A stretch of DNA of 41,670 nt. Source: Macrostomum lignano. Lineage: Eukaryota. The stretch lies in the NCBI GenBank assembly GCA_002269645.1, contig NIVC01004574.1, forward strand, positions 1-41,670, written 5' to 3'. The notes under the pieces are model-generated. The model was given only the letters and a program-made list of their open reading frames with translations. It was not told the origin of the DNA and made no database searches. A program made the translations under genes and the position numbers. Shown here one piece after another: positions 4,785 through 41,670 of this stretch (the stretch's first letter is position 1; each line of letters starts with the position of its first letter).

Positions 4785-5045
4785 ACATCTGTTAGACAGG
4801 AATTGACATCTGTTAGACAGGAATTGACATCTGTTAGACAGGGATTGACATCTGTTAGACAGGAATAGACATCTGTTAGACAGGAATTGACATCTGTTAG
4901 ACAGGTATTGACATCTGTTAGACAGAAGTTGACATCTCTTAGACAGAAATCGACATCTGTTAGACAGGATTTGACATCTGTTAGACAGAAGTCGCCATCT
5001 GTTAGACAGGAATTGACATCTGTTAGACAGTAACGTCTGTTAGAT
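4785..5045. repeat. Minisatellite, 21 bp unit (GACATCTGTTAGACAGGAATT), ~12 copies
   Basis: Direct tandem copies inside the protocadherin intron. Confidence 0.95.
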
Positions 5046-5389
5046 GAGAAAGTCTCTCGGATAATGCTAGACAGGTGCCACTCAAGCTCGTCAGCTACTT
5101 GTAGTTTAAATTTGCGCGAAAATAGGACATTGATTAAACAAACTAAGGTTCTATTTAGCCATCTGTGGCAGTCTCTTTCTCAGTTGTTCGTATCGGATTG
5201 GAACTTTTCATTTTGGGTCTCCAGAGTGTCTCTTTCTGTTCGAAGTCTAAAACACCTGCTAGGCAGAAACATCTGGTTTACATAAGTTTCTATTCATCCA
5301 TTCTGCCTACGATCTTTCCTTTAGCTCACCCTAAAAGACCATCCAGCAACTTATCAACGCGCTTTCACGGCAACACGGCAACGCCTTAC

Positions 5390-8248: not shown

Positions 8249-9511
8249 TGTATTGTGAAAGTGCGATTAATCACTGCATCAAAATGTTCCTTGGGTAAAA
8301 ACTTAAGCAAACTTCAAAGCATGACAATATGATACAGATGCTTGTTTCGTATTTCCTTCTGTATTAGTTGCTTCTTAAATGATTTCAGGCAACACAGTTG
8401 ATCTTGCCTTGATGAAGAATGCGCAGCATTGGTTGCTTACACTGGGCACCCAATTGCAGCCCGATCTGTGGACGATTTTTTATTGACAGCCAAACGCAAG
8501 CTACCCAATTGGACAGTGAGGAGAGATTAGTCTAAATTAGGCGTCCCATAATAAACTGGAGTGTAGATTTATTGCTATTTACTTAGTACACTACTTGTCC
8601 GCAGTAGTTTGTAGGTAATTTTACTTCAACAGATGTATGAACGGGTCCTCATTCTATACAAGTTTGCTAATTGACTCACCCACGGGACTCGCTCACCCGT
8701 TAACACACCGATAAACTCACACACTCAAGCGCCAACTCACTTAACTCCCACTCATAAAATTCCTTATGAACTCACTCATAAAATTCCTCATTAACTCACT
8801 CATAAACTCACTCATTAACTCACCCATAAACTGACCCATGAACTCATGTACTCAAACATCAACTTACTTAGTAAAAAAATGAGAAAATGAGACTTAAAAG
8901 AAAACGGTTAAGAAAGTTAATTAGCATAGCAAAGCAATTAATTACACAGTTTTTACACTACACACTACAAAACACACTACACCTAACCAGTATCATGTAA
9001 AATACATGGAGACAGAGAGGGCAGATGGGTGAAAAACGAGGAGGGGGGGGGTTGAGTGTAGAAAAACGCAATGTACATACATTCCCGGGAGTGTACACAC
9101 AGTCCAACACCTCTCTTACCCTCCCTCTTAGCCCTTATGCGTTCCTTTCTATCCATCCAGCCAGGCCCCATGCGGTTGGTTAAGGAAAGAAAGACAGGAC
9201 TGCGACCAACAGAGAAAAGGTAAGACACATGTGACCTGTCCCACCACTGCCCCGACTCGTTTATATGAGCTTGTACACTCATTTCTTCAGTGACTCAGGC
9301 TCAAAAATTCAAGGTGAGCTCATTTTAATAAGTCTTCCTGCTGTCTGAATGCAAGGCGTGAATAAAGTAATAAAATCCTCTAAATTTAACTACGCTGGTT
9401 AATCCCCATTGCCAACCAAGAAGCTACTCAGTCTCACTGTACACTTGGTGCGCCACATACAACTGTAAGTTGATACTCTACCTGTCTTTTCTTATTAGCA
9501 CCTCATCTAGT

Positions 9512-11136
9512 CAATTCTACTAATTAATTAAGCGCCAATTCTACTAAATTAAGCGCCAAATCTACTAAATTAAGCGCCAAATCTACTAAATAAAGCGCCA
9601 AATCTACTAAATTAAGCGCCAAATCTACTAAATTAAGCGCCAATTCTACTAAATTAAGCGCCAAATCTACTAAATTAAGCGCCAATTCTACTAAATTAAG
9701 CGCCAAATCTACTAAATTAAGCGCCAAATCTACTAAATTAAGCGCCAAATCTACTAAATTAAGCGCCAATTCTACTAAATAAAGCGCCAAATCTACTAAA
9801 TAAAGCGCCAATTCTACTAAATTAAGCGCCAAATCTACTAAATTAAGCGCCAATTCTACTAAATTAAGTGCCTATTCTACTAAATTAAGCGCCAATTTTA
9901 CTAAATTAAGCGCCAATTTTACTAAATTAAGCGCCAAATCTACTAAATTAAGCGCCAATTCTACTAAATAAAGCGCCAAATCTACTAAATAAAGCGCCAA
10001 TTCTACTAAATTAAGCGCCAAATCTACTAAATTAAGCGCCAATTCTACTAAATTAAGCGCCAATTCTACTAAATTAAGTGCCTATTCTACTAAATTAAGC
10101 GCCAATTCTACTAAATTAAGCGCCAATTCTACTAAATAAAGCGCCAATTCTACTAAATTAAGCGCCAATTTTACTAAATTAAGTGCCTATTCTACTAAAT
10201 TAAGCGCCAATTTTACTAAATTAAGCGCCAATTCTACTAAATTAAGCGTCAAATCTACTAAATTAAGCGCCAATTCTACTAAATTAAGCGCCAATTCTAC
10301 TAAATAAAGCGCCAATTCTACTAAATTAAGCGCCAAATCTACTAAATTAAGCGCCAATTCTACTAAATTAAGCGCCAATTTTACTAAATTAAGTGCCTAT
10401 TCTACTAAATTAAGCGCCAATTCTACTAAATTAAGCGCCAATTTTACTAAATTAAGTGCCTATTCTACTAAATTAAGCGCCAATTTTACTAAATTAAGCG
10501 CCAATTTTACTAAATTAAGCGCCAATTCTACTAAATTAAGCGCCAATTCTACTAAATAAAGCGCCAATTCTACTAACTTAAGCGCCAAATCTGCTAAATT
10601 AAGCGCCAATTCTACTAACTTAAGCGCCAATTCTACTAAATTAAGCGCCAATTCTACTAAATTAAGCGCCAATTCTACTAAATTAAGCGCCAATTCTACT
10701 AAATTAAGCGCCAATTCTACTAAATTAAGCGCCAATTCTACTAAATTAAGCGCCAATTTTACTAAATTAAGCGCCAAATCTACTAAATTAAGCGCCAATT
10801 CTACTAAATTAAGCGCCAATTCTACTAAATTAAGCGCCAATTTTACTAAATTAAGCGCCAAATCTACTAAATTAAGCGTCAATTCTACTAATTTAAGCGC
10901 CAATTCTACTAAATTAAGCGCCTATTCTACTAAATTAAGCGCCAATTCTACTAAATTAGGCGCCAATTCTGCTAAGTTAGGCGTCAATTCTACTAATTTA
11001 AGCGCCAATTCTGCTAAATTAAGCGCCAATTCTACTAAGTTAGGCGTCAATTCTACTAATTTAAGCGCCAATTCTGCTAAATTAAGCGCCAATTCTACTA
11101 AATTAGGCGCCAATTCTACTAAGTTAGGCGTCAATT
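9512..11136. repeat. Minisatellite, 21 bp unit (AATTCTACTAAATTAAGCGCC), ~77 copies
   Basis: Direct tandem copies between the divergent protocadherin and CEP70 starts; explains the LALNLV[DE] ORFs. Confidence 0.98.
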
Positions 11137-18370: not shown

Positions 18371-18411
18371 CAATCAGTCATCAACCGGCCAATTAATCAA
18401 TCAACCAAAAG

Positions 18412-19009
18412 GCCGAGCTGTCACTCGCAGTGGACACGAAGTCGCCCAACTACGAGCGCCACCGAGGCCAAGAGCTGGGCCAGCTGGCCCCAGAGCAGTT
18501 TCCACGCGGTCAGTTTGACCGTCAGCTGCTCCGCTCAATGCCCAAAGCTGGTCAGCAACAGCAACAGCAAAATCGTTTCGTTGTGGCCCGTTTCCATGAC
18601 AACAGATTGACTCTTTGCCCGATCTCGTCTACGGCTAGACTAGTAATGCAGCCTGTGCTGGAGCATCTGGACTCGGCGGCAGCAAAATCTTCGACCGAGC
18701 AGCAGTCGAATGCTGGTGCAGCTGGCGACGATGCAGACGCTGCCAGAGCCGTCACTCTGCGCTTCGCTCGACAGGAGACTCCGGAAGCTCGTCAGCGTAG
18801 GGAGCAGAGCTACCGAGTCTGCCAGCGGCTGCTCGAACAGGAACCCTGGACTGGATGCCAGTGGCTGTCAGTTGACGAGGATCAGCCTCTTCGTAGTAAT
18901 GACGAATTTCTTTTAGGCGTTGTTAATAGCAACAGCGAGAACGAGCCGGTTGCTATGGATACGAGAGAACCAGTGCCTAAAACTGGTGGAGAAGCTAGGG
19001 AGGCTGGTG
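18412..19009 (+). CDS. POLR3E: POLR3E exon 4 (Sin/RPC5 domain)
   Basis: AELSLAVDTKSPNY... and VTLRFARQETPEARQRREQSY...EEPW-like motif match RPC5 (AIDTLNPNY; VRFSRPESEQARQRRVQSY). AAG acceptor; GTAAGT donor, phase 1. Confidence 0.92.
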
Positions 19010-19214
19010 GTAAGTTTTTCATTTTTTTCATGTGCTTAGACTCTCACTTGATGACTAAGAGTTTGACGAAATCAGAGTCTTGATTTATTTAATCCACTGT
19101 TGCTTTTGCATCAAAGTTGCAGACTTTTGTGTCTTACCTTTGGTCTGCCACAATTTACACTGGCTGGATCCGTCGTATGTTCTGTCCCGTCTAAAATTGG
19201 TCTCTCTCCTTATT

Positions 19215-21426: not shown

Positions 21427-21489
21427 GTCAGTTTTGAATGGTTTTTGTGTTTATCTCCTTCCCTGATGTTAATCCACCCTGCTTTGTCC

Positions 21490-24400
21490 ATCCGCCTCCT
21501 AATCCTCCTTGAGTGTGTGACCCATCCGCCTCTTAATCCTCCTTGAGTGTGTGACCCATCCGCCCTCTAATCCTCTTTGAGTGTGTGACCCATCCGCCCC
21601 TTAATCCTCCTTGAGTGTGTGACCTATCCGCTCCTTAATCCTCCTTGAGTGTGTGACCCATCCGCCCCTAATCCTCCTTGAATGTTACCCATCCGCCCCT
21701 AATTCTCGAGTGAGTGACCCGTCCGCTCCCTAATCCTCCACGGGTGTGTTACTCATCCGACCCCTAATCCTCTTTCAGTGTGGGACCCATCTGCCCCCTA
21801 ATCCTCCACGGGTGTGTGACCCATCCGCCCCCTTATCCTCTTCCAGTGTGTTACTCATCCGCCCCCTAATCCTCCATGAGTGTGTTACCCATCCGCCCTA
21901 ATCCTCCACGGGTGTGTTACTCATCCGACCCCTAATCCTCTTTCAGTGTAGGACCCATCTACCCCCTAATCCTCCACGGGTGTGTGACCCATCCGCCCCC
22001 TTATCCTCTTCCAGTGTGTTACCCATCCGCCCCTAATCCTTTTCCAGTGTGTTACCCATCCGCCCCCTAATCCTCCATGAGTGTGTGACCCATCCGCCCC
22101 CTAATCCTCCTTGAGTGTGTGACCCATCCGCTCCTTAATCCTCCTTGAGTGTGTGACCCATCCGCCCCCTAATCCTCCTTGAATGTTACCCATCCGCCCC
22201 TAATTCTCGAGTGAGTGACCCGTCCGCTCCCTAATCCTCCACGGGTGTGTTACTCATCTGACCCCTAATCCTCTTTCAGTGTGGGACCCATCTGCCCCCT
22301 AATCCTCCACGGGTGTGTGACCCATCCGCCCCCTTATCCTCTTCCAGTGTGTTACTCATCCGCCCCCTAATCCTCCATGAGTGTGTTACCCATCCGCCCT
22401 AATCCTCCACGGGTGTGTTACTCATCCGACCCCTAATCCTCTTTCAGTGTAGGACCCATCTACCCCCTAATCCTCCACGGGTGTGTGACCCATCCGCCCC
22501 CTTATCCTCTTCCAGTGTGTTACCCATCCGCCCCTAATCCTTTTCCAGTGTGTTACCCATCCGCCCCCTAATCCTCCATGAGTGTGTGACCCATCCGCCC
22601 CCTAATCCTCCTTGAGTGTGTGACCCATCCGCTCCTTAATCCTCCTTGAGTGTGTGACCCATCCGCCCCCTAATCCTCCTTGAATGTTACCCATCCGCCC
22701 CTAATTCTCGAGTGAGTGACCCGTCCGCTCCCTAATCCTCCACGGGTGTGTTACTCATCCGACCCCTAATCCTCTTTCAGTGTGGGACCCATCTGCCCCC
22801 TAATCCTCCACGGGTGTGTGACCCATCCGCCCCCTTATCCTCTTCCAGTGTGTTACTCATCCGCCCCCTAATCCTCCATGAGTGTGTTACCCATCCGCCT
22901 TAATCCTCCACGGGTGTGTTACTCATCCGACCCCTAATCCTCTTTCAGTGTAGGACCCATCTACCCCCTAATCCTCCACGGGTGTGTGACCCATCCGCCC
23001 CCTTATCCTCTTCCAGTGTGTTACCCATCCGCCCCTAATCCTTTTCCAGTGTGTTACCCATCCGCCCTCTAATCCTCTTTGAGTGTGTGACCCATCCGCC
23101 CCTTAATCCTCCTTGAGTGTGTGACCTATCCGCTCCTTAATCCTCCTTGAGTGTGTGACCCATCCGCCCCCTAATCCTCCTTGAATGTTACCCATCCGCC
23201 CCTAATTCTCGAGTGAGTGACCCGTCCGCTCCCTAATCCTCCACGGGTGTGTTACTCATCCGACCCCTAATCCTCTTTCAGTGTGGGACCCATCTGCCCC
23301 CTAATCCTCCACGGGTGTGTGACCCATCCGCCCCCTTATCCTCTTCCAGTGTGTTACTCATCCGCCCCCTAATCCTCCATGAGTGTGTTACCCATCCGCC
23401 CTAATCCTCCACGGGTGTGTTACTCATCCGACCCCTAATCCTCTTTCAGTGTAGGACCCATCTACCCCCTAATCCTCCACGGGTGTGTGACCCATCCGCC
23501 CCCTTATCCTCTTCCAGTGTGTTACCCATCCGCCCCTAATCCTTTTCCAGTGTGTTACCCATCCGCCCCCTAATCCTCCATGAGTGTGTGACCCATCCGC
23601 CCCCTAATCCTCCTTGAGTGTGTGACCCATCCGCCCCCTAATCCTCCTTGAATGTTACCCATCCGCCCCTAATTCTCGAGTGAGTGACCCGTCCGCTCCC
23701 TAATCCTCCACGGGTGTGTTACTCATCTGACCCCTAATCCTCTTTCAGTGTGGGACCCATCTGCCCCCTAATCCTCCACGGGTGTGTGACCCATCCGCCC
23801 CCTTATCCTCTTCCAGTGTGTTACCCATCCGCCCCCTAATCCTCCTTGAGTGTGTTACCCATCCGCCCTAATCCTTTTCCAGTGTGTTACCCATCCGCCC
23901 CCTAATCCTCCATGAGTGTGTGACCCATCCGCTCCTTAATCCTCCTTGAGTGTGTGACCCATCCGCCCCCTAATCCTCCTTGAATGTTACCCATCCGCCC
24001 CTAATTCTCGAGTGAGTGACCCGTCCGCTCCCTAATCCTCCACGGGTGTGTTACTCATCCGACCCCTAATCCTCTTTCAGTGTGGGACCCATCTGCCCCT
24101 AATCCTCCACGGGTGTGTGACCCATCCGCCCCTTATCCTCTTCCAGTGTGTTACCCATCCGCCCCCTAATCCTCCTTGAGTGTGTTACCCATCCGCCCTA
24201 ATCCTTTTCCAGTGTGTTACCCATCCGCCCCCTAATCCTCCATGAGTGTGTGACCCATCCGCTCCTTAATCCTCCTTGAGTGTGTGACCCATCCGCCCCC
24301 TAATCCTCCTTGAATGTTACCCATCCGCCCCTAATTCTCGAGTGAGTGACCCGTCCGCTCCCTAATCCTCCACGGGTGTGTTACTCATCCGACCCCTAAT

Positions 24401-24645
24401 CCTCTTTCAGTGTGGGACCCATCTGCCCCCTAATCCTCCACGGGTGTGTGACCCATCCGCCCCCTTATCCTCTTCCAGTGTGTTACCCATCCGCCCCCTA
24501 ATCCTCCTTGAGTGTGTTACCCATCCGCCCCCTAATCCTCCACGGGTGTGTGACCCATCCGCCCCCTTATCCTCTTCCAGTGTGTTACCCATCCGCCCCC
24601 TAATCCTCCTTGAGTGTGTTACCCATCCGCCCCCCTAATCCTTGA
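21490..24645. repeat. Intronic satellite, ~33 bp monomer (GTGTGTGACCCATCCGCCCCCTAATCCTCCTTGA) with ~501 bp higher-order repeat
   Basis: Marker AATTCTCGAG recurs at 21701, 22202, 22703, 23204, 23671, 24003, 24333. Confidence 0.95.
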
Positions 24646-27114: not shown

Positions 27115-27800
27115 AATGGTAGATTGACCCGGATGTGGAGTGGGTATACTGGTAGATTGACCCGGTTATAGAGTGGGTATACTGGTACCAGGTAGATTGA
27201 CCCGGATGTAGAGTGGGTATACTGATAGATTGACCCGGATATAGAGTGGGTATACTGGTAGATTGACCCGGATATAGAGTGGGTATACTGGTAGATTGAC
27301 CCGGTTATAGAGTGGGTATACTGGTACCAGGTAGATTGACCCGGATGTAGAGTGGGTATACTGATAGATTGACCCGGATATAGAGTGGGTATACTGGTAG
27401 ATTGACCCGGTTATAGAGTGGGTATACTGGTAGATTGACCCGGTTATAGAGTGGGTATACTGATAGATTGACCCGGTTATAGAGTGGGTATACTGGTAGA
27501 TTGACCTGGATATAGAGTGGGTATACTGGTAGATTGACCCGGATGTAGAGTGGGTATACTAGTAGATTGACCCGGATGTAGAGTGGGTATACTGGTAGAT
27601 TGACCCGGATATAGAGTGGGTATACTGGTAGATTGACCCGGATGTAGAGTGGGTATACTGGTAGATTGACCCGGATATAGAGTGGGTATACTGGTAGATT
27701 GACCCGGATATAGAGTGGGTATACTGGTAGATTGACCCGGTTATAGAGTGGGTATACTGGTAGATTGACCCGGATGTAGAGTGGGTATACTAATAGACTG
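27115..27800. repeat. Minisatellite, 33 bp unit (TAGATTGACCCGGATATAGAGTGGGTATACTGG), ~20 copies
   Basis: Tandem copies between the convergent POLR3E and GPCR 3' ends. Confidence 0.95.
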
Positions 27801-27897
27801 ACTGGTAGATTTCAGTAGTGAACTGGTATGGGTTTTTTTCTATAGTGCAAAAAATTAAGTTTAACAATTGCTTTGAGTTTCTTTATTTCAAATTAAG

Positions 27898-28581
27898 TCA
27901 AATTGATCGTGTGCACTTCACTCGGACAACTCGTAATCGCGGAGCCGAACCTCTAGCCAGATGAATAACTCTATTGTAAGACTGCGGGTGCGTCTTCACT
28001 GCTGAACCATCTGAGGCCAGGCGGTGTGGCTTCTGTGGTTGAGATCCATGTGCAGCAGCTGCTGCAGTACCTCCTCCGCTGCTCTGATGGTTCAGCTGGT
28101 GATGCTGCTGCAGTAAATGCTGAAGCTGCTGATGCTGCAGTTGCTGCTGGCCAGACTGACACCTCAGAAAGCGCACAATGGCCAGTCGGTATCCTTTGTT
28201 CATAAAACAGTAGAACAGAGGATTCAGAAACGCGTTCATGTAGCTGAGTATCCAGAACAGGACGTAGAGCCAATCTGTGCTGGTCAGGTTGGTTGTCCCT
28301 GTGACGATCATGTTCTCAACCACTTGCCAGGGCATATTGGTGAGCAGGAAGGAGATCAGTACGCAGGTGACAATGCGGAACGATTTCACCAGTCGGTTGG
28401 CCAGGGTTGAACTTCGACGTACATGTACGCCGGCATGCTGACGGGAGAGTCGGCTGTTGACTCCGCTGCCACCAGCTGTACATGTAGCTATTAGCGACTG
28501 CGAAGCGGTGTCCACGCAGCTCTCCTGCAGCGAGGAGGCTGCAGCAGCCAAGCGGTGATTGGGGCTTCTTGACTGACGAGC
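27898..28581 (-). CDS. Class A GPCR exon 2 (ICL3, TM6, TM7, C-tail)
   Basis: cactaaa...ttgcAG acceptor, phase 0; FLLTNMPW (TM6); SYMNAFLNPLFY (NPxxY); helix 8; Gln-rich tail. Confidence 0.88.
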   Translation of the reverse strand, partial: ARQSRSPNHRLAAAASSLQESCVDTASQSLIATCTAGGSGVNSRLSRQHAGVHVRRSSTLANRLVKSFRIVTCVLISFLLTNMPWQVVENMIVTGTTNLTSTDWLYVLFWILSYMNAFLNPLFYCFMNKGYRLAIVRFLRCQSGQQQLQHQQLQHLLQQHHQLNHQSSGGGTAAAAAHGSQPQKPHRLASDGSAVKTHPQSYNRVIHLARGSAPRLRVVRVKCTRSI

Positions 28582-28647
28582 CTGCAATCAGGTTTTAGTG
28601 GGTGAACGACTTGAATTGAAATACTTTTAAGACGCTTCGCTTCCTAT

Positions 28648-29224
28648 AACGCAGGCACACGAAATTCAAGAACACGAACCAACTTTTTGTTGCGCACCTT
28701 CTCAAACAAGAATCAAGTCGCCAGCCCTCCTTGCGTAGATAGACCTCATGATCACCTTGCGCCACCTTTTGAAGGTGCGGACGGCGTCGGAGTGATGACG
28801 GAATGCTTGAGAGACTAGCTGAGGATGTCCAGCAGTTGAGGCTTGTCCACTGTCGAGACTTGATCGACGAAACTAGAGAAATCCGCATCAGGGTGTCCAT
28901 AGTCACCTGGTGCCACCTGCTGAAGGTCCAGAAGCTCCGCCTGGGTGAAGGCCAGTGACCAACAAAGTCAGAGCTGATGCAGACGCAGACACATGTGATC
29001 GGCGTGCTGTTGAAATTTGGAGGCTTGGCAAGGCTGCACTGAGGCGCAGTGCTAATTGGCGCACAGGGGTGTACTGAAGACACAGGCGCTTATGGGAAAA
29101 ATCCGACCTTCTGGCAGAATCGTCGAATATCTCGACGGTCCGGTGGGCTGGCGACTTGATTCTTGTTTGAGAAGGTGCGCAACAAAAAGTTGGTTCGTGT
29201 TCTTGAATTTCGTGTGCCTGCGTT
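28648..29224. mobile_element. Fold-back element fragment: perfect 80-bp inverted repeats (28648-28727 / 29145-29224) around a 417-bp core
   Basis: Arms are exact reverse complements. The right arm plus core is homologous to 1579-1824. No TSD found. Confidence 0.75.
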
Positions 29225-29509
29225 GCTCCCTTCCGGCGCAGCAAAAAATTGTCAGGGGGGAATTTTCCCTCCCTCTCGGTAGTTCTACCGTTAAGATTCT
29301 TTTTAATGTGTCATTTAACTATTAAGAATAGTTACTGAACTGAGAGGTTTGACCCGGTATAACAAAGACGCAAACTATAAAATGTGATGCATAATGTGAA
29401 ATTCGATATTTGCTACCAGCTCGCACCAGTTATAAATAGGATAGCCCCGTTTTGTTTTTGTATTATAAAATACATGTAAACTGTTTCGAGAACGTGCGAG
29501 TTTAGAGAA

Positions 29510-29900
29510 GCGCCCCCTGTCTATTGGTGGGCGCCCGTCTCTTAGTGAGCGCCCCTGTCTCTTCGTTGGGCGCCCCTGTCTCTTAGTGGGCGCCCGTCTC
29601 TTATGAGCGCCCCCTGTCTCTTCATTGGGCGCCCCTGTCTCTTAGTGGGCGCCCGTCTCTTATGAGCGCCCCCTGTCTCTTCGTTGGGCGCCCCTGTCTC
29701 TTAGTGGGCGCCCGTCTCTTATGAGCGCCCCCTGTCTCTTCGTTGGGCGCCCCTGTCTCTTAGTGGGCGCCCGTCTCTTATGAGCGCCCCCTGTCTCTTC
29801 GTTGGGCGCCCCTGTCTCTTAGTGGGCGCCCGTCTCTTATGAGCGCCCCCTGTCTCTTCGTTGGGCGCCCCTGTCTCTTGGTGGGCGCCCGTCTCTTGGT
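29510..29900. repeat. Minisatellite, 59 bp unit built from three ~20 bp GCGCCC-TGTCTCTT monomers
   Basis: TAGTGGGCGCCCGTC recurs at 29584, 29643, 29702, 29761, 29820. Confidence 0.93.
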
Positions 29901-30487
29901 TACCAGACTGCTATTCTTTCTGTAATGCAAAAATTATGATACAATTCTATTATCAATTAATCTAGAATAAGAATCAATAAATATTTAATTTTTAATATAT
30001 TTGTCGTGATAGACCTGTAGATTAAACTCTATGATAAAGAAAAGCTAGAACAGTTGTTAAATCTATTTTTTAATCCTCGAATATCTTCGAATATTTTCTT
30101 ATCTTTTGGGAGATGAAATCCGAATATTACCGAACAGATATTCGACAAGACAGCTCGTGCTTCTATGAGTATTTTATTTCTTAGCTTTTATTAACTCTTG
30201 GCCTTTGTTTCAAAGTTCACTAGACAATCCCGTTCATGATTATCAAACTTAGATTAATCCTTCGGTCTCTTAAAAACAAATAATTAATTAAAATCCTCAT
30301 CCAATTATTTGGCGGCTCATTGAGACGGCACGAACGACAAGAACACCCTATTGAGATTAAACAAAAGGCTTTGGAATGATATCACAGATTGTGAGTTATG
30401 GAATTACTTCTAGTTGCTGCCAAGATTATGAAACCCTTCCACTAAGCTACAACCCTTTCCATTGAGGAGAATGTTTTGTGCGCGTGA

Positions 30488-30697
30488 GGGGTTGCTTTCA
30501 CAAACGCGAAAATTCACAACCACTAAATCACCTTCTTTCATAACCGCGAAACTTCACAACCGCTAAAAAGACTACCGTATATGAAAGTAAGTGCAAAAGT
30601 TTTAGCGGTTGTGAAGTTTCGCGTCTATGAAATTTAGCGCTTATGAAAGTAGGTGCTTTTAGCGGTTGTGAAATTTCGCGTTTGTGAAAGCCACCCC
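30488..30697. mobile_element. MITE, 210 bp, long imperfect TIRs (GGGGTTGCTTTCAC...GTGAAAGCCACCCC), 8-bp TSD with one mismatch
   Basis: TIRs pair over ~80 bp with internal CGCGAAA.TTCACAACC.CTAAA subrepeats. Flanks are GCGCGTGA and GCGTGTGA. Confidence 0.75.
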
Positions 30698-31033
30698 GCG
30701 TGTGAGGGTTAGGAGCCTGCCGCGGAAGTGACAGCGGGATATCAACTTGGTTGACAGGCTAGAGGACAAATTCTGTTTCTCAAACTTCGCAGATATTATC
30801 TCTGTGCCATTTTTAGCAGATCTTCTCAATCTGCTCGGTTCTTGCAGAATCTTCTACGAAGGGAGGTAAATTTGTTTTGTCATTCATTTGGCTTAAGTTT
30901 TAGCTTTATTATTTTTTATTTTCTGGTAAAATAGGACAATAAATATAATAAAAATGTGATTTGAAGCTATAAGAACATATAAAAGTTAAGATCACAGAAT
31001 ACTGTGGTATTCTGTGGTTAAGATCTTGTACGA

Positions 31034-32186
31034 TGTAGCAAGTCGCCCAGATCTGGTAAGTTTACTGAAATACAATGGTTTTCTCGGGGTGGCCTGGTAG
31101 GTCTTTGAATCCCACCGCTGCCACCAGTGAAATAGATAGCGTTTTTCTCGGGGTGGCCTGGTAGGTCTTTGAATCCCACCGCTGCCACCAGTGAAGTACA
31201 ATGGGTTTTCTTCCCGGTTTAGGCCCTTGCGGATTACCTTAATCTTGAGCCTCTTCAGTGGGAAGTTCTCTCAACTCTCTCAGTAGCGTAGGTAGTGCTG
31301 CCACCAGTTCCTTCAGGTCTCGGCCTTCGATGAGGTGAGCTTCCCGTCGGAACGAAATAAACAAGTCAACGAACTCAGCACAGTGTGCAGATTTGCAGAT
31401 TAATGAACAAGGCGTCCTGATCAGCAGATCCCCGCCGGGCTCAGGGGTGGCTAGGAAGGCAGTGTTAGCCTCCCTTAGGCTTGGGCTTTAGTGGGGTCTC
31501 AGTCAGACCAGTACAAACGGATTCAGTACGCAAAGGGCACTTAGTTAGACACTGACGCACACGGGTTCTTAGTGAATTCTCCGCAGATAAGAAGCCAAAA
31601 TCCTTGACGGAAACAAGGGGAGAGGGGTCCTATTTATAGCCGGGAAACACCCACGCACAAGACCTCGTGACTTGTTCTATTTTTAGAACTGACGTCACTT
31701 GAGATCTCGAGGCAGGGTCTCAGTGCGCGCAAGACCTCGTGACTCGTTCTATTTTTAGAACTGACGTCACTTGAGGTCTCCGGCCAGAGTACACGCGGCT
31801 GTGACTCAGTTGCTATTTTTAGCAACATGAGTCACTCCTCTCCTTAGAGAAGGGAGGGGTCCAAAAGCACGTGATTCTCCCGGTAAACAGGGCCAACGAG
31901 TGCAGTAAACATGTTTACTGCACTTTAGGACTCGAAGAACGCAGAGTCTGTCATGTGACTTGCTCACATGACAGAGGAAAACGGGACGGGAACGAAACAG
32001 AGACAGCCCACAGCAGAGAAGCTAAGGGCTGAGAACAGAGACGCCGAAGGGCAGAACAGGCCAAGGGCAGCAACAGACGGGCCAAGGGGGCGGGAAGCTG
32101 ACCAGCGGCAGACAGCAACCCAGGGCGAGGGCGAGGGAGACTGCTGACAAAGTGGGACGCCTAACACCAACTAGCGGATCACTACA
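31034..32186 (-). mobile_element. Possible solo LTR (1153 bp)
   Basis: TGTAG...CTACA ends; TATAAATA on minus strand (31638-31631) downstream of tandem 72-bp enhancer-like repeats; 64-bp-spaced duplication at 31079/31143. No TSD, PBS, PPT or minus-strand AATAAA found. Confidence 0.35.
31630..31975. promoter_or_regulatory. Dense cis-regulatory motif cluster (MEF2 x4, CRE x2, AP-1 x2, FOX x3, E-box/M-box x3)
   Basis: Exact consensus matches; see the finding for positions. Confidence 0.6.
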
Positions 32187-32335
32187 TTACCCTAAGTATT
32201 ATCATAGCGAAGATCTTGCACGTTCTTGAAAGTACTTGCGCAGCAACCCAAGAAGATAGATAAGATCTGTTAAGAATCAACAAGTCAATGCCTTCTAGGG
32301 GATCCTTGGACTGAACAGCCGTACGCAGCCTTCAG

Positions 32336-33048
<713 letters not shown>

Positions 33049-33056
33049 AGACTCAC

Positions 33057-33779
33057 CGCGTTGGTCGAAGTGGCACCAAAAGCGCGAGAGGACTTGAGAA
33101 TGCGGAATACCACAGCGCCGTAAAAGAAGACCAGCAGCACGATGGGGATGTACAAGGCCACCGTCCGGTGTGCGATGCCCGCCGCGGTGTCCTGGTAAAT
33201 CGGATGGCCGCAGGCACCGAAGGCCTCCCTGGCCCGGAAGCCGGACAGCACGGCCCACATGGGGAAGGTGGCGATGCACCTGGCGGAGGTGACGAGCCAC
33301 ACCGCGGCGCACAGACGGAGCTGATTGGCGCGGTGCATCCAGCGCTTGTGCAGGAACACAAAGTTAGTAGCTAAAAATCTGTCGAAAGCAACAGTGGTCA
33401 CGCTCAGCATGCCAACGTTAGTGCTGATGTAGTCCACCGTGATCCACAGGTCGCAGGACCATTTCGGCAGCGGCCAGCCGCCGCACAGGGTTCTCACCAG
33501 GTAGCCCGGCAGAGCCAGCATGCCGACAAGAATGTCGCTGCTCACCATCAGGCCGACGATGAACACGTGACCGGGGACGCGGTGGACGCTGCGGTCGCGA
33601 AGGAAGACGGCAAAGATGGCCGCGTTGACGAAGGTCACGTAGCCGGCAAGCAGAGAGCCGAGGGAGGCGAGCAGCAGGCGATGGGAGAGTTTGTAGGGGC
33701 TGCTGACGGAGCAGGAGACGAATGAGGAGCGGTGATCGGTGGCGTTTGGAGTTGCTGAGGGCAGACTGTGGAGAGACAT
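33057..33779 (-). CDS. Class A (aminergic/muscarinic-like) GPCR exon 1 (TM1-TM5)
   Basis: SDILVG (TM2), GGWP, CDLWITVDY with Asp3.32, DRF, W4.50, IP...FFY (TM5). GCG|GTGAGT donor, phase 0, joins exon 2; about 468 aa in total. Confidence 0.9.
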
Positions 33780-35720
33780 CCTTGAGCGGTGGAGGTTGAG
33801 CTGAGAAAAGTAAAACCTTTCGCACGAGGGCGTTAGAGTATTTTCGCTCTTTTTTCGTCTGATCGGGGCTTCGTATATTTGATCCGTTTTGCCTTGGTCG
33901 GCTGATGAGGATTAAGGGCTGCTGACAGCTGATTGGCTCCTCGAGTTGGTATTGGAACTCTTTCTTCCCTGATCTTCCCTTTCAAGCTCAATCAAATGAA
34001 TATTCTTGCACATGTATTCTCTCCGTTTGTCTATCTTTGCTATCTGCTTTGGTCCTTATTCTCAACATGTACATCGTTCAAGTAAAGAATTTCATTGGTT
34101 GCATATATGGACTTCGATTGCGTATAGGCGGACAAAGACCATTAAACGTCTAAACAAAGTTACGAGTACATGTACACAGTACATCCACCAGCTCCTCATA
34201 CAAATGTCCAGTTTAGTGTTTGATTGATTGTTTACACATGCAGGTAAAGCCTGTGACTCGTTGGTGCGAAAGAAAAAAAAACATATTTTGCAAAGCTGTT
34301 TCCTGATTCTGACCGTGTGAAAGATATTGCTATACCTGTACTGTATCTTGAAAAATTGACGTGCAAATCTATAGGAATTTAACTTTTTGTTTTACTTATA
34401 CACTGCTTCATTAGAGCGCACGCATTTAACATGATACCTCATTCGGGTTAAGTTGTTCGAATCTTTACCCGAAGTCGGACGAGTATACTATTTAAGATAG
34501 CACTCAGTATGGCTGCTGCGGATTAGTAACTAATACAATATACTAGTAGTTTACATGCAAATTATTAATTTTTATTATTATTATTTTATATGATTATTTT
34601 ATGATTATTTTATATTTATTATTATTAATCTGTTTTGAGTTTCAAACCAAGACATTGTTTGTATGCAATAATTAATGTTAACCTTTGACTGCGTTGTGAA
34701 TCGATTTGTAATACAATTTTGAACAAAAAAGCTAACTTAGTCAAAATACAACGCATAAGCTGCATGGCGATTTTAATTGACTCATCGTTACAATATTAAT
34801 TAATACAAACAGTCTGTAAGCTGTAGTTTGTCGATTAAATAAGTCACTATTAATTTTAGATTTACCTGTCTGTATGCATAAATGAAGTCAATATATATAT
34901 TTAATTGTCAGGTTTTCGAATATTTAATTTTCTATATCTTATAACCTAAAAAATGCACAGGCAGATATTCGTTAGACTGAAATATTAAATAATGTTTCTT
35001 ATTTTATTTACGAGTACTCTTTTATTACTTGCAGTCATTGTAGCTAGATATAAAAATTTTTACTGATAATTATACTATTATTAATATAATAGATTATACG
35101 TTAATATTATGAAAATAATAATATAATTGTTAAAATTATAATATTATCAGTATATTATCAATATCGATTTTCAGACACACTGTAGTAACTTAGTCTAAAT
35201 GTTCCAACATTTTTATTGTTTAACTTTTTTGTTTTGAATAATTTATACAATTTGGTTTGTGTATTATAAACTGTCTGTAATATATTTCAAGCTGGTAACT
35301 TAGCTAAAGCCTCGCTAATCTTCATGACTACTGCTGCAACTATCTCGAAAGTTTCATCTATAAGTTTTAACTCAAATTCTCAACTTGAATTCTCATTCCT
35401 GTTATTCATTATAACAGGCAAGCAAGAACAAGCATTTTCCAATAAATGCCGGCCAGATGTGTCACAAAAAGTGTAAGTGCACACCATAGAAATTTAAATG
35501 AATTATGGAGGATAAGTGAAAAGAGGGGTAGAATTAATCATTTTTAGTTGCAACAAACTTTGAATCAAAATGGTTCCATTATTGAAATACGTCAGCATTT
35601 GTCCTAAATGAGTTCCTGAGCCCCTCCATCGGACTAAAAGTGCAGCTTCTGCAGTTCCCTGAGCACACGCTCCACAATGCCTCAGCTTCTCCAAACTCTC
35701 CTCTTCAGCTCAGATGAGCC

Positions 35721-37271
35721 ATGACCGAAGCCACTCAAGCAGGCAGTCGGCGCTGCTCCCTGGCCACCTGCAGCGAAGCAGCTGCTGGCGCCGGAGCTCA
35801 GACACTGCAGCCTCTGTGCCAGAGACACCTGGACCGAGACTCCGACAGAGTGCGCGAAATTCATGCCAGAGTCGAAGCGAGGCTGCAGCCTCTGAGGCTC
35901 GTTCGCGACCTGCTAAGAACGGACTCGCAGGCGCTAGAAGCGAAGCTACAGGTCACTGAGGATCTGCTCAATGCCGCCATTGAGTCGCTGATGAAGCACA
36001 AGGAAGCTGTTACGAATCGACTCACTGCCACAACTGACGCAGCAAGGCAGAAGCTGAGCGACTTCGCAGTGCTGCAGGAGTTCGACAGCTCGATGGCAGC
36101 GGCGGAAAGCGCCAACAATCTTCGAGGCATCTTTGAGCAGTGCTCTCGCATGGAGCTGGAGTGCAGCGATCTCGAAAACGCTGTGTCTGGTGGAGACGAA
36201 CAAGGACGACTGAAGCTGGGCGACGTTTGCGGAGCTCTGAGAGACTTGCAGCTGAGCATCGACAGGCAGTTCGAGGACGTGATGAAGCTGTTCGAGAGTG
36301 TTAGTCCGCTGAGAGAGGAGAAGCAGAGCATTTGTGAGTTCCACAGCGAGATCCAAGAACTCGATGGTGCGCCTGCTTGGGTTTCATGCTGCAGCAACAC
36401 GAAGGGCTTCTCCGCTGATGCTTCAGGCAGCAAAGTGGTGAAGGCGGAGTCTGCGGTCGATGGTGCACAGATGCTTCCCGAGCCGTGTCTGTTCGTAGCT
36501 TTTGATTTGCGATCCGATCTGGATTACCTTCTCGCGTGTTCGATTGACGGATCCGTGAGGCTGAAAGTTCAAGTCGACCTCGACTGGTTCACGCCAATCA
36601 CAGGACTCAGCTGTGACAGCAAGCGCCAAGCTCTGTACATCTCGCAGAAAAACGTGGTCAAGGTGTCGGACCTGAGCGGTCAGGTGTCACTCGAGATCAA
36701 CTCGAGCAGCCTCGGACGGCCTGTCAGATTCATGGGGCTGACCTGCAGCTCTGACAAGATAATTGCTCTGGACAAAAGCGGCTCGGAAATGCAGCTGCTG
36801 TGCATCGACAAAGACAGCGGCCAGCTGCAGACCTGCGTTTCTGTCGGTGGCGTGCCCAGTTCCCCAGATCGCTCGGAATCCATGTCGGTCATCGACCATG
36901 CGGTGCTGATCACTGACTGGGCAGCTAAAAAGATCTACAAAGTGTGCATCGTCAGCGGTCAGCTGATCTCGACCTACCCGACAAGCCGAAGTCGTCTTGA
37001 TGAGCTTCTGAGTCCTGCAGGAGTTGTGGCTCATCGCTCAGGTCTGGTGTTCGTCAGCGAGTATAATAGGCATGTGGTTCGTGTGATGCAAAGTGACGGC
37101 ACTGTGCTGCAGACTGTCGGAGTCGAGGGCGAGGCTGGCAGAGGCCGAGACAAAATGCACTGTCCGTGTGTCTTGGGCACCGTCGAAGGCGACTCAGAGC
37201 TGCTTGCCGTGTGCCAGCAGGAAGGACTGTCCATCAGATTTTACCGAGTTTCAACTGGTTCTGCCGTGTGA
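35721..37271 (+). CDS. Intronless Zn-motif / coiled-coil / NHL-type beta-propeller protein (TRIM-NHL-like, no RING), 516 aa
   Basis: C-x4-C...LC-x2-H N-terminus, heptad region, and propeller repeats (LYIS, VLITD, SPAGV, VFVSE..HVVRV, QTVGVEG). Confidence 0.8.
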   Translation: MTEATQAGSRRCSLATCSEAAAGAGAQTLQPLCQRHLDRDSDRVREIHARVEARLQPLRLVRDLLRTDSQALEAKLQVTEDLLNAAIESLMKHKEAVTNRLTATTDAARQKLSDFAVLQEFDSSMAAAESANNLRGIFEQCSRMELECSDLENAVSGGDEQGRLKLGDVCGALRDLQLSIDRQFEDVMKLFESVSPLREEKQSICEFHSEIQELDGAPAWVSCCSNTKGFSADASGSKVVKAESAVDGAQMLPEPCLFVAFDLRSDLDYLLACSIDGSVRLKVQVDLDWFTPITGLSCDSKRQALYISQKNVVKVSDLSGQVSLEINSSSLGRPVRFMGLTCSSDKIIALDKSGSEMQLLCIDKDSGQLQTCVSVGGVPSSPDRSESMSVIDHAVLITDWAAKKIYKVCIVSGQLISTYPTSRSRLDELLSPAGVVAHRSGLVFVSEYNRHVVRVMQSDGTVLQTVGVEGEAGRGRDKMHCPCVLGTVEGDSELLAVCQQEGLSIRFYRVSTGSAV

Positions 37272-37439
37272 CACAAATGACTGTAAATCACCTTTCGATT
37301 CAGCTCTGCATCTGCATGTTTTTGCTTTATCAAAATGTACTATTTTTATGCTCTGCGTGTTTTGACACATGAATTGAAGCTTGACCATTATAGTTTTAGA
37401 ATTTGTGCCTGGTAACAGCAGTAATTTTGTATAACAAAG

Positions 37440-38345
37440 CGGATTTTTACCTTAACCATGACTTCAGCAGAGAAAATGAGTTCGTCTTTGACTTTTAAAT
37501 GGATGTGTTTCACCAATTTTGAGAATTTCAGTTCCAAACTTGGTGAAATTTGGTTGCAGATTTTGCATTTAGGCGTTGATATGGTTTCGCTGTTACAAGT
37601 TGTTCGCTGTTGCTGATTTAGATTTAGATTTATTAAATTATTAAATAATCAAATTTGATTATTTGATTATTAAATTTAGATTTTGCTTGAATATGAATGG
37701 GAGTTTCATTTGTGAGTTTAACTTGGTGGCAGCTAAGTTCTTCTGGCTACCTGGGTGAACGAGTGTTGAATTAGCGAATAAATCAGGTGCTATTCCGGAC
37801 ATGAATGCTGGCTCTAGATTTTGGCTGTGTGATTTTATTTGTTAGGCCGAGCTCAAACATCATCTGATTTGCCGACGAACTCAGCGCAGTTCAGGCGCTG
37901 CTCTGATGAAGAACCAAGGCTGCCAGCTTCGTAAGGCTTTGTTTGACGTCTTTGTTATTCAGCTCAGACAGTTTGACTCAAAGCATTCTCATGTGTTTGA
38001 CTGCACCATGTGAGTTGTTGCTAATCTGATGCCTGATCAGTGCTCAATTGCATGCATTGCTACTCATCTGTACTACGAGCAAACGAATCTTGAAGGTTTT
38101 TATGAGTCCTGATGACATCTGTGATAACTTTTATTGAATTTTAAAACTTCCAAATCTTTACCAGCCAAGCTAATGTACCGGTTTCTGCTGTCTTGCAGTT
38201 GGGTTTATTGATTTTTTGTGACTAGTGGTGTACTTTAGCTAACAACTGCGTGTACTTTTACCAGCAGCAGCCAATGTTGCCTCAAATACATCAGTTTGCA
38301 GAGCTGTTATTGTTGTGATGCTGTTCGACAAATTTCATTTTAAAC
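37440..38345 (+). repeat. 3' flank of NHL paralog 1, homologous to ~40460-41270 (segmental tandem duplication, period ~3 kb)
   Basis: Shared blocks, e.g. GAAAATGAG.TCGTCTTTGA, CCAGCCAAGCTAATGTACCGGTTTCTGCTGTCTTGCAGTTGG, GACAAATTTC.TTTTAAACAC. Confidence 0.9.
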
Positions 38346-38804
38346 ACGATCATGCAATCAGCATCAGACAGAGCAACAAGTGCCAGCTGAGTAGATCCGA
38401 AACCCCTCAAGACTGAGCTAAGCTGAAGGCATCATTTGATGAGGTAAATTAAAAAAACTCAAGCTCTCAGATACTTAAGATTTCTTATGTTCTCCCCAAT
38501 TAACCTACTGAGGCTGAGACCTGGGATTTTCTATGACCCATTTTCTATGATTTTCTATGAGACGACTCTGCACCCTCGTGGCCAATCCGATGGGATTCGG
38601 CACAGAATCCGCTCCGGTAGTTCGACTAAGCTGACATCTTTTTTCGGTGTTGTAAAAGTCCCTGAGCTGGTCCTGCGCAATGCTGATGCAGTGTCTCCCG
38701 CAGCTGATCCATTTTCTATCAAAACAATAATGAAGCATTTTAGCCTGGCGCATTCGATATATTGAAAACTTTTTGCACATTTTCAACGCCATTCTTCAAG
38801 CACA

Positions 38805-40339
38805 ATGTCTGACTCGAGCCCGAGCTGCTTCATCAGAGGCTGCAGCGCTGCCCCGACCGGTACCGGCGTTCGCCTCCAGAGCCCCTGTGCGAGAGACACG
38901 TGGCTCAGGACGCTGCCGCGGTGCGCTACCTCGCACAGAAGGCGCTCGAGCAGCTGCAGCCGCTGAAGAGTCTGCGAGACGGCCTTCGAGTTCATCAGCG
39001 AGCGCTAGCAGCCGAGCTGCAGAGCGTCGAGCAGCTGTTCGAGTCGGCTGTGGAGTCGCTGCTCACCTACAAGGAATCTGTGCTCAACCGATTGACTGTG
39101 AGACATGAGAGCAGCCTGCAGAAGCTGAATGAGCTGTCAGTGCTGCAGGAGTATGAGATTGGCCTTACTGAAGCTGAGGCCAATGCTGACCTGAAGACAT
39201 TGCTCTCACTCTCAGCTGCAGTGAGTGCGGAGTGCGGCGACTTGGATGAAAAGAGAGACAGCTTTGAGTAAGTCGGCAGAGACATTGGCGACGTGAGCGG
39301 AGGCGTGAGAGACTTTCAGCTGCTGATTGACAGGCAGCTGAGCGATGTGATGAAGCTGTGCGAGAGTGTTGGTCCGCTGAGCGAGGAGAAGCAGAGCATT
39401 TGTGAGTTCCACAGCGAGATCCAGGGACTCGGTGGTTTGCCTCTTTGGGTTTCATGCTGCAGCAACACGAAGGGCTTCTCCGCTGATGCTTCAGGCAGCA
39501 AAGTGGTGAAGGCGGAGTCTGCGGTCGATGGTGCACAGATGCTTCCCGAGCCGTGTCTGTTCGTAGCTTTTGATTTGCTATCCGATCTGGATTACCTTCT
39601 CGCGTGTTCGATTGACGGATCCGTGAGGCTGAAAGTTCATGTCGATCTCGACTGGTCCACGCCAATCACAGGACTCAGCTGTGACAGCAAGCGCCAAGCT
39701 CTGTACATCTCGCAACAAAACTGGGTGAAGGCGTCGGACCTGAGCGGTCAGGCGTCGCTCGAGATCAACTCGAGCAGCCTCGGACGGCCAGTCACATTTA
39801 TGGGGCTGACCTGCAGCTCTGACAAGATAATTGCTCTGGACAAAAGCGGCTCGGAAATGCAGCTGCTGTGCATCGACAAAGACAGCGGCCAGCTGCAGAC
39901 CTGCGTTTCTGTCTGTGGCGTGCCTTATGGACAAATATTTGACGAATCCATGTCGATCATCGACCATGCGGTGCTGATTACCGATTGGGAAGCTGGTAAG
40001 CTCTACAAAGTGTGCATTGACAGCGGTCAGCTGATCTCTACCTACCCGACTAAGCGAAGTCGTTTTGATAAGCTTCAGAGTCCTGCAGGAGTCGCTGCTC
40101 ATCGCTCGGGTCTGGTGTTCGTCAGCGAGTGTTTTAATCATGTGGTTCGTGTGATGCGTAGTGACGGCACTGTGCTGCAGACTGTCGGAGTCGAGGGCGA
40201 GGCTGACAGTAGCGAAGACAAAATAAACCATCCGTATGGCTTGGCCATCGTTGAAGGGCACTCCGAGCTGCTTGCCGTGTGCCAGGAAGAAAGCCTCTCC
40301 ATCAGATTTTACCGAGTTTCAACTGGTTCTGCTGATTGA
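38805..40339 (+). pseudogene. Tandem paralog of the 35721 gene, disrupted by a frameshift (~38882) and an in-frame TAA (39269-39271)
   Basis: ATG 38805 is in a different frame from PLCERH.... ORFs 38900 and 39293 share a frame separated only by TAA, which aligns to CAA in paralog 1. Confidence 0.7.
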
Positions 40340-41670
40340 CGGCGGATGATTGTGAATTTACCTGTTATCGCCATGTTTTTGCTGAATTACAAATTTTTAT
40401 TTTTATAATCTGCATGTTGGACCAATTAATTGGAGCTGTTTTACCGCAGCCTGTGAGCACAGAATAGAAAATGAGCTCGTCTTTGATTTTTAAATGGATC
40501 TGCTTTACGAAATTGTTATGCTTTGCCAAATTTCAAAATTTCAGTTACAAACTCGGAGCACCAATTTTCGTGAATTCTGTTAGCAGACTTTACATTGGCG
40601 CGTTGATTTGGTTTTCCTCTCACAAACTGAGGTGACACCAATCTGCTTGTAGAGTTAATCTGTGATTATGATTGATCAGGAGGTTCATCTGTGGGTTTAA
40701 CTTCTAAACTACCAGGTTATTCTGGCTACCTTCGTGAATAAGTGAAGAATAAGCGAATAATCAGGTGACATTCTAAACATGAATGCTGGCGCCAGATTTT
40801 TGTCTCATCAGAGCTTCTGCCGCTTGAGGCTACTCAAAGTTGCTGTTAGAGTTTATTTGTTAAGCCGTGCTCCAATAAAATATGATTTGTATCTGTTCTA
40901 TTCAGACAGTCTCAAAGCATTCTCAAGTGTTTGACTTTACCATGTGAGTTGTTGCAAATCTGATGCTTGACAGTGCTCAATTGCATGCATTGCTACTCAT
41001 CTGTCTCATCTAATATTGGAGGCTTTATGAGTCCTGATAATATCTGTGATAACTTTTATTGAATTTTGAAACTTCCAAATATGTACCAGCCAAGCTAATG
41101 TACCGGTTTCTGCTGTCTTGCAGTTGGTTTTATTGATATTTTAGTAGTAACGTACTTTAGATAACAATTGCGTTTACTTTTACCGGCAGCTGCCAATATG
41201 TTGCGTGAAATAAAGAAGCTTTCAGAGCTGTTACTGTTGTGCTGCTGTTTGACAAATTTCTTTTTAAACACAGATTCGAGGTTCTCAAGAAAGGGCGTCT
41301 TCTTCTTTAAATAACGGAATCGGAGTCGTGTGCCCCTATCGGTTACTCTAGGGTACCAAAATCATCAATTGATAATCCTCTAAGGGTATTGGAATCGGTC
41401 CGCAGATCCTATCCAATCCCTTAGGAATAGGGAGGCCTCAAATTCAAAAAAATTCAGTAAATTCAACTGAACAGTAACGGCCGTCAATAAAATCGCTCTC
41501 AATAATCAAATAACGAAAACTTGAACAAAGGCTTACCGAACGGCATCTACTTCTCTCAGAGATGTACATGTAGCCTCGTAGTTCCTGGGTGTGCTCAAGT
41601 CGAGGCTGCTCCGAGTCTGAGATTTCAGCTCGGATTTTTCGCTTGTATTTATAGACAAGTTTGCGAAATA

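Follow-up and report, generated by a model that had tools for sequence, protein, structure and literature searches.

A motif-dense intronic cassette in Macrostomum lignano is probably the U3 enhancer-promoter of an LTR retrotransposon remnant

Deltaretrovirus long terminal repeats (LTRs) contain three 21-bp repeats that each carry a cyclic AMP response element (CRE), gammaretrovirus LTRs contain 72–75-bp tandem enhancer repeats, and unit duplication is a recurrent route to a stronger retroviral promoter. LTR sequences are also abundant in the flatworm Macrostomum lignano, whose genome consists of 21% LTR retrotransposons and 15% simple and tandem repeats (PMC5730564). Consensus sequences of 137 M. 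lignano LTR families are published. Six M. lignano LTR families have canonical heat-shock elements (HSEs) upstream of their TATA boxes, four of these six are heat-induced more than 250-fold, six families that lack an HSE are induced moderately, and an isolated M. lignano LTR drives a reporter in an HSE-dependent manner in transgenic worms (PMC12801592). Here we analyze contig NIVC01004574.1 of the M. lignano assembly GCA_002269645.1 over its whole length (positions 1–41670; the window), and in it a dense cassette of regulatory motifs that lies within the intron of a predicted G protein-coupled receptor (GPCR) gene. An earlier note on this DNA had read the cassette on the plus strand as a signal-responsive enhancer borne by a transposable element (TE). 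We conclude instead, with a probability of roughly 0.85, that the cassette is the U3 enhancer-promoter of the long terminal repeat of an M. lignano LTR retrotransposon. This assignment rests on the TG..CA ends of the element, target-site duplications at two genomic sites, a tRNA-complementary primer binding site, and the finding of another copy in the genome.

The LTR proper is 995 bp long and occupies positions 32186–31192 of the minus strand, the strand on which all LTR features below are read. It begins with TG (TGTAGTGA) and ends with CA (..TACTTCA), and similarity to the second copy stops exactly at this TG and this CA. A 4-bp target-site duplication, GTAA, abuts the LTR upstream at 32187–32190; its downstream copy is found at 31062–31065, where it follows ...CCATTGTATTTCA, the last remnant of an LTR end. 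One base past the terminal CA lies the primer binding site, TGGTGGCAGCGGTGGGATTC (31171–31190). All 20 positions of this sequence agree with a published antisense probe directed at the 3' end of tRNA-Leu(AAG) with its CCA (PMC6103689), the tRNA compared being the human one. ARAGORN detected no tRNA in the window or in loci L001–L004. An extension of the match as tRNA read-through beyond the 20-nt primer binding site was dropped, as just 4 of the next 10 positions match the probe. Nor did we accept the 9-nt direct repeat GGAACGAAA (31351 and 31990) as a target-site duplication; we attribute it to chance. The earlier proposal that the cassette is TE-borne is thus upheld by the structure of the element.

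The primer binding site occurs twice, at 31190–31171 and again at 31126–31107, as part of two 64-bp tandem units that span 31066–31191 (Tandem Repeats Finder [TRF]: period 64, 2.3 copies, 86% matches). Each unit opens with a C and the primer binding site, continues with ~21 nt of leader and closes with a copy of the terminal ~21 nt of the LTR; ..TTTCA is the end of the second unit, which directly abuts the target-site duplication. The whole insertion therefore comprises one LTR, the primer binding site and a short tail (32186–31066), and the 3' LTR has shrunk to ~21 nt. It is an LTR retrotransposon remnant stripped of its gag-pol body and not a clean solo LTR. The remnant could have arisen either by internal deletion followed by the 64-bp duplication or by aberrant reverse transcription with template switching, in which both ends recognised by integrase were retained. 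The empty site before insertion is predicted to read ..ACTTAGGGTAAACTTACCAG.. on the minus strand. The likeliest superfamily would be Ty3/Mdg4 (gypsy), given the 4-bp target-site duplication and the predominance of this superfamily in M. lignano (PMC12801592). An exact database look-up of two small open reading frames (ORFs) within the LTR returned no record.

A second 10-nt match to the 3' end of tRNA-Leu, TGGTGGCAGC, is located within U5 at 31297–31306 (~4313–4322 in the second copy), ~105 nt upstream of the primer binding site, whose first bases it repeats. It belongs to a ~100-nt block that is ~96% kept in the second copy. Positions 31306–31297 had been tried as the primer binding site itself and were rejected, because the second copy places TGGTGGCAGC inside U5. 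The site may be a second primer-contact or packaging element.

All of the motifs on which the enhancer proposal had been built are present in the cassette. The MEF2 consensus CTA(A/T)4TAG occurs at 31630, 31677, 31749 and 31813 and nowhere else in the 41.7 kb, and the CREs (TGACGTCA) at 31690 and 31762 represent two of the three TGACGTCA sites of the window. AP-1 sites, TGA(C/G)TCA, are found at 31802 and 31828, forkhead sites (GTAAACA/TGTTTAC) at 31883, 31905 and 31912, and CACGTG at 31868. Additionally, GTCATGTGAC/TCACATGA is present at 31950 and 31964, so that both TCA(Y)(R)TGA MiT-type sites of the window fall in the cassette. The 346 bp contain 14 motif matches, compared with a mean of 0.33 and a maximum of 5 in 20,000 dinucleotide-preserving shuffles, and 12 matches are left after one 72-bp copy is deleted. 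Sliding windows along the contig with at least five matches all overlap the cassette, in agreement with the density that had been claimed. Because the motif set was picked after reading the sequence, we added a palindrome test that is free of motifs. This test gave eight calls of perfect inverted repeats with a stem of at least 7 (three distinct palindromes) against 0.25 expected, and 0 of 2000 shuffles reached eight.

The motifs are arranged in dyad-symmetric blocks. Palindrome P5 (31947–31975) consists of TCTGTCATGTGA and TCACATGACAGA separated by 5 nt, with a 12-bp stem (−12.0 kcal/mol, z −5.5) and two MiT/TFE or E-box-like CATGTG motifs. P4 (31899–31924) is a perfect 26-bp palindrome in which two forkhead sites, GTAAACA and TGTTTAC, stand head to head. 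The third forkhead-type site, GTAAACA (31883–31889), and the CACGTG E-box (31868–31873; TCACGTGC on the minus strand) are both kept in the second copy. Unit 3 (P3; 31801–31835, −14.4 kcal/mol) reads TGACTCA - GTTGCTAAAAATAGCAAC - TGAGTCA, that is, two AP-1 sites of the TPA response element (TRE) type around a core that is MEF2-consensus or TATA-like. Unit 2 (31726–31797) is the distal 72-bp copy and holds the CRE TGACGTCA and the core CTAAAAATAG in a ~46-bp imperfect palindrome, and unit 1 (31654–31725), the proximal 72-bp copy, likewise holds a CRE and CTAAAAATAG. The 72-bp direct repeat itself aligns 31654–31718 with 31726–31790 at 89% identity. Homology among the three units, which are spaced by 72 and 64 bp, is clear, and the CRE of units 1 and 2 and the TRE of unit 3 are one base apart in length. 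A paired change distinguishes the units as well: GTTCTA..TAGAAC in units 1 and 2 corresponds to GTTGCTA..TAGCAAC in unit 3, in both genomic copies. This change is a dyad-keeping difference between paralogous units, as expected for a homodimer site. Thus, the duplication, the 26-bp and 12-bp-stem palindromes and the paired change that had been pointed out before are all real.

Where our reading departs from the earlier note is in strand and function. On the minus strand the cassette has the makings of a complete promoter within the probable U3-R-U5 layout of an LTR, rather than of a free-standing enhancer. The order on this strand is P5, P4, the single forkhead site, CACGTG, unit 3, units 2 and 1, TATA box and initiator. 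Units 2 and 1 read GTGACGTCA - GTTCTAAAAATAGAAC - (G/A)AGTCAC, and unit 1 is followed by CCCGGCTATAAATAGGA and then, 33 nt past the first T of the TATA box, by CCGTCAAGG. The first of the sites formerly listed as MEF2 (31630–31639) is the TATA box, CTATAAATAG, which is 100% kept in the second copy including its flanks CCCGG..GGA. An initiator-like CGTCAAG with a conserved TCA (CCGTCAAGGA is kept) lies at 31603–31609, with the putative start at A31605, 33 nt past the first T of the TATA box. U3 would accordingly span 31606–32186 and contain the full motif cassette upstream of the TATA box and initiator, and the predicted R-U5 (31192–31605) is without ATG on the minus strand. An ATG-free run of ~850 nt on this strand (30977–31825) is the longest outside satellite arrays, and the ATGs of the segment (CAT on the plus strand) number 2 against 11.3 expected (P ~2e-4). 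U5 also offers a possible 5' splice site, TTAAG/GTAATC (31236–31238), with TTAAGGTAATC present in both copies. No canonical heat-shock element, nGAAnnTTCnnGAAn, occurs anywhere in the window, and the stretch 31200–32300 has a single two-unit GAAnnTTC/TTCnnGAA match, which lies beyond the LTR at 32223.

The search for further copies covered ~95 kb of M. lignano DNA from outside the window, taken from the surroundings of paralogues of an NHL-like gene. It yielded a second copy on contig NIVC01000989.1 (L005), in which 4211–5233 matches window positions 31190–32187 with 81.5% identity over 1037 bp (blastn) and the flanks are unrelated. The LTR proper, 32186–31192, aligns with 4213–5232 of this locus, and both copies start with TGTAGTGA and end with TTCA. 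The second element is bounded by CTTA on each side, indicating a solo LTR with a 4-bp target-site duplication. Comparison of the two copies shows the cassette to be the best-conserved part of the LTR. Identity is 91% in the cassette, 83% in distal U3, 64% with several indels in the 200 nt past the putative start site and 85% in the rest of U5; the cassette is conserved above the rest of the LTR with a Fisher P of 1.6e-12, and it is still higher (P 3e-4) when compared with distal U3 and late U5 alone, the hypervariable R part being left out. Among its parts, P4 (inside a 49-nt perfect block) and the TATA box are 100% identical, followed by unit 3 (97.6%), the unit 1 core (97.4%), P5 (93%) and two of the spacers (71% and 77%). 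Conservation of the palindrome and TATA blocks exceeds that of the spacers (P 0.008). Identity collapses ~12 nt past the TCA initiator, which fits a promoter/transcript boundary at this point.

Several observations weigh against the LTR promoter assignment or limit what the conservation can carry. The comparison rests on just two copies, and the higher conservation of U3 could derive from a mosaic or recombinant subfamily history and not from selection. In the second copy, unit 2 has lost both of its sites, the CRE reading TGATGTCA and the MEF2-like core CCAAAAATAG, P5 carries a mutation in one arm, and in no case does the opposite arm show a compensating change. It follows that some sites are redundant or decaying and that not every site is constrained. 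The expectation that the motifs would be conserved among copies was therefore borne out for the cassette as a whole, and failed for unit 2 and for one P5 arm. Additionally, the window contains no second LTR, no ORF of at least 110 amino acids across 29311–32273 and no gag-pol sequence. Neither AATAAA nor ATTAAA is found on the minus strand of the LTR, which leaves the R/U5 boundary undefined.

The element had been placed within an intron of an aminergic receptor gene, and the predicted gene structure supports this location. Pfam 7tm_1 positions 2–186 match ORF 33045–33911, and positions 188–260 match ORF 27901–28587, both on the minus strand. Coding exon 1 (33057–33779, TM1–TM5; 7tm_1 1.5e-20) ends in ..AACGCG before a GTGAGT donor, and coding exon 2 (27898–28581) follows the acceptor ..TTGCAG, starts with GCT and encodes the third intracellular loop (ICL3), TM6–TM7, NPLFY and the tail. 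The predicted GT..AG intron between them (33056–28582; 4,475 bp, phase 0) holds the LTR remnant in sense orientation relative to the GPCR, both being on the minus strand. The exon junction is in frame (..TSTNA/ARQSRSP..), the reading frame is intact across the two exons, and the TM3 aspartate and the DRF and NPLFY motifs are present. The best solved relatives of exon 1 (PDB) are the muscarinic M2, 5-HT5A, beta-1 adrenergic and histamine H3 receptors, and a rhodopsin-class, amine-type (muscarinic/5-HT-like) GPCR is a fair description of the predicted protein. The gene is absent from the called genes in the examined contig stretch 25721–41670, and exon 1 has no relative in a set of 5.8 billion proteins. 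Apparently, this GPCR is a divergent, unannotated receptor.

Other features share the receptor gene with the LTR. An (ATCT)178 microsatellite (32336–33048) starts 8 nt past the predicted exon 1 donor and makes up 713 bp of the intron, with the LTR insertion 146 bp from its far end. Beside exon 2, the intron contains a foldback/MITE-like element (28648–29224) whose 83-nt arms are 99% complementary and separated by 411 nt; a related sequence lies inverted at 1595–1825, 27 kb off on the same contig, at 86–97% identity. A 59-bp tandem array of 6.5 units (29514–29897) is also intronic, and a 33-bp array of 20 units (27117–27802) lies immediately 3' of the GPCR stop codon. Within exon 2, the 12-nt TGGTGGCAGCGG (28463–28474, minus strand), in the third intracellular loop (..TAGGSGV..), equals the start of the primer binding site, probably by chance in GC-rich coding sequence.

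Three other explanations of the cassette were considered. It is unlikely, in our view, that the window copy has been exapted and now serves the GPCR as an intronic signal-dependent enhancer or an alternative promoter, even though the setting is suggestive: the LTR shares the orientation of the amine-type receptor gene in whose intron it lies, its TATA box, initiator and most sites are intact, its sense strand is without a canonical poly(A) signal that would truncate the host transcript, and U5 has a conserved putative GT donor. However, the motifs are equally kept in the unrelated, intergenic solo LTR on contig NIVC01000989.1, so that it is the TE family, and not the GPCR locus, that accounts for their conservation. 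Also counting against exaptation are a receptor with neither a called gene in the contig stretch 25721–41670 nor a database relative, and the fact that a transcript spliced from the LTR to exon 2 would encode TM6–7 only.

Quite improbable is the explanation that the palindromes work as nucleic-acid structures (cruciforms, hairpins in retroelement RNA or DNA, or small-RNA precursors) and not as protein sites. Folded as single-stranded DNA, the five dyad blocks do far better than shuffles (z −3.1 to −6.6), and the transcribed genomic RNA includes U3 at its 3' end; yet each core fits exactly the consensus of a dimeric factor, and such sites are inherently palindromic. The symmetric insertion on both arms of unit 3 keeps the dyad, but a homodimer site predicts this equally. 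Moreover, the differences between copies are uncompensated, with one arm affected in P5 and two unpaired changes in unit 2, which favours redundancy of the duplicated units and disfavours a need for hairpin pairing. An Rfam scan of the intron gave only sub-threshold, microRNA-like matches to the palindromes, the only family named being mir-17, whose 22.6 bits fall short of the 49.5 cut-off. That the motifs cluster by chance, or that the cassette is a piece of a regulatory region from a DNA virus with palindromic repeats and CRE/TRE sites, is already refuted for practical purposes. The motifs were indeed selected post hoc, and some large insect DNA viruses have homologous regions with palindrome arrays and CRE-like and TRE-like sites. 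Against this, 0 of 20,000 shuffles reach the observed count, the TG..CA ends, the 4-bp target-site duplications at two independent sites and the tRNA primer binding site are retroelement hallmarks, and two scans of viral contigs, one for the exact pattern of the CRE/MEF2 unit and one for the exact 26-bp palindrome, were without a match.

A 24-nt exact match, TCTATTTTTAGAACTGACGTCACT, to the CRE and CTAAAAATAG core of unit 1 was found in metagenomes, at one eukaryote-like locus in two samples (JGI contigs Ga0209681_1001146, L001, positions 44–67, and Ga0056131_1001805, L002, positions 1756–1779). Beyond these 24 nt, the locus resembles neither the window nor other M. lignano loci. As ~0.1 chance matches are expected by a rough estimate, we regard the match as a coincidence or a convergent CRE-TATA promoter module.

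For the LTR promoter, the binding proteins, the start of transcription and any activity of the window copy are matters that we infer from sequence, and the following model is conditional on them. The element would bring its own RNA polymerase II promoter, with upstream dyad-symmetric sites that receive dimeric host factors. Basic helix-loop-helix leucine zipper (bHLH-Zip) proteins of the MiT/TFE, USF or Myc types could occupy CATGTG and CACGTG, and forkhead proteins the 26-bp palindrome and the single forkhead site. Basic leucine zipper (bZIP) proteins of the CREB/ATF and Jun/Fos types would bind the three homologous units, two with a CRE and one with a TRE pair, whose A/T cores of the CTAAAAATAG type fit the MEF2 consensus and might be contacted by a MADS-box MEF2-type protein or by TBP. 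These sites would feed the TATA box and the TCA initiator, from which transcription would proceed via the ATG-free R-U5 leader toward the primer binding site. If active, the window copy could send transcripts into the intron toward exon 2, some of which might splice from the U5 donor into that exon, or could act as an intronic enhancer.

A more specific proposal, which we put forward tentatively and hold to be doubtful, is that this LTR family represents a second, HSE-independent class of signal-inducible M. lignano retrotransposon promoters. Such promoters would use cAMP/CREB, AP-1, FoxO-type forkhead and MiT/TFE or USF inputs and answer to wounding, regeneration, neuronal or muscle activity, or starvation; the intronic copy might then impose such regulation on the GPCR or drive truncated transcripts. 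As the LTR has no canonical HSE, any inducibility would run through pathways other than the heat-shock pathway. The term signal-responsive is itself hypothetical, since the activity/immediate-early grammar and the FoxO/TFEB starvation grammar behind it are carried over by analogy from vertebrates to a flatworm.

The remainder of the contig is rich in repeats and contains several other coding features. TRF detected more than 20 tandem arrays in the window, including a 34-bp unit repeated 95 times (21488–24642; 3.2 kb) and a 21-bp unit repeated 77 times (9512–11136), and several long apparent ORFs are artefacts of such arrays. Tandem paralogues of a ~510-amino-acid protein are encoded on the plus strand at 35718–37268 (a 517-codon ORF) and 39272–40336, and further ones occur at loci L003 and L005–L008. 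Their N-terminal half is coiled-coil-like, with a weak NHL-repeat match (E 0.062) and no Pfam domain above threshold. Relatives of this NHL-like protein were found only in M. lignano, at 47–67% identity and in tandem clusters on at least three contigs, and the proteins look like a lineage-specific expanded family. A family member lies less than 5 kb from each LTR copy, which may merely reflect where the search was made. The end of contig NIVC01001356.1 (L003, 1–5508) overlaps window positions 36153–41670 at 97% identity and is presumably the other haplotype or a recent duplicate; the overlap ends short of the GPCR and so gives no allelic view of the insertion. A 970-codon open frame (5357–8266, minus strand) encodes six cadherin repeats after a signal-peptide-like start (protocadherin/FAT-like), and its database relatives are all at or below 32% identity, the window's own protein not being among those returned. 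Lastly, an exon-sized ORF at 18397–19080 (plus strand), directly 3' of a (TCAG)171 microsatellite, matches the RNA polymerase III subunit RPC5 (Pfam PF04801, E 1.4e-25).

What had seemed an exotic enhancer cassette becomes, on the LTR promoter assignment, an ordinary and checkable LTR promoter. For annotation, this means that the motif density in the GPCR intron should be masked as repeat and not counted as host regulatory sequence. Working transgenesis is available in only a few flatworms, M. lignano among them, and recent work has shown that LTR promoters of this species hijack the heat-shock pathway. With bZIP, MEF2-consensus, forkhead and E-box sites that are intact and in part conserved, the compact predicted promoter (~370 bp) is a candidate for a second kind of stimulus-coupled TE promoter, and might double as a small transgene promoter.

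An LTR promoter is an ordinary kind of object in a repeat-rich genome such as this one, and it is in site composition that the present element differs from what has been described for M. lignano. Like Mlig-id115|Mag, Mlig-id55|CsRN1 and Mlig-id38|Gmr1/Osvaldo of the same species, it has a U3 with host factor sites upstream of a TATA box (PMC12801592). Those HSE-bearing families exist as full-length copies and as solo LTRs near or inside genes, and the present LTR belongs to this kind of object. In contrast to them, the present LTR is without a canonical HSE and has CRE, TRE, MEF2-consensus, forkhead and E-box sites. The architecture of its U3, in which enhancer units built on bZIP/CRE cores are duplicated in tandem ahead of a TATA box, resembles that of deltaretrovirus and gammaretrovirus LTRs, although there is no sequence relationship, the flatworm remnant is primed by tRNA-Leu, and there is no sign of a viral transactivator or env. 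Finally, it resembles the intronic solo LTRs and internally deleted elements that serve through TE exaptation as alternative promoters or enhancers, since here too one LTR with its promoter intact lies in a host intron in the sense direction, and differs from clean solo LTRs in having kept its primer binding site and a duplicated 64-bp tail that ends in the last ~21 nt of the LTR.

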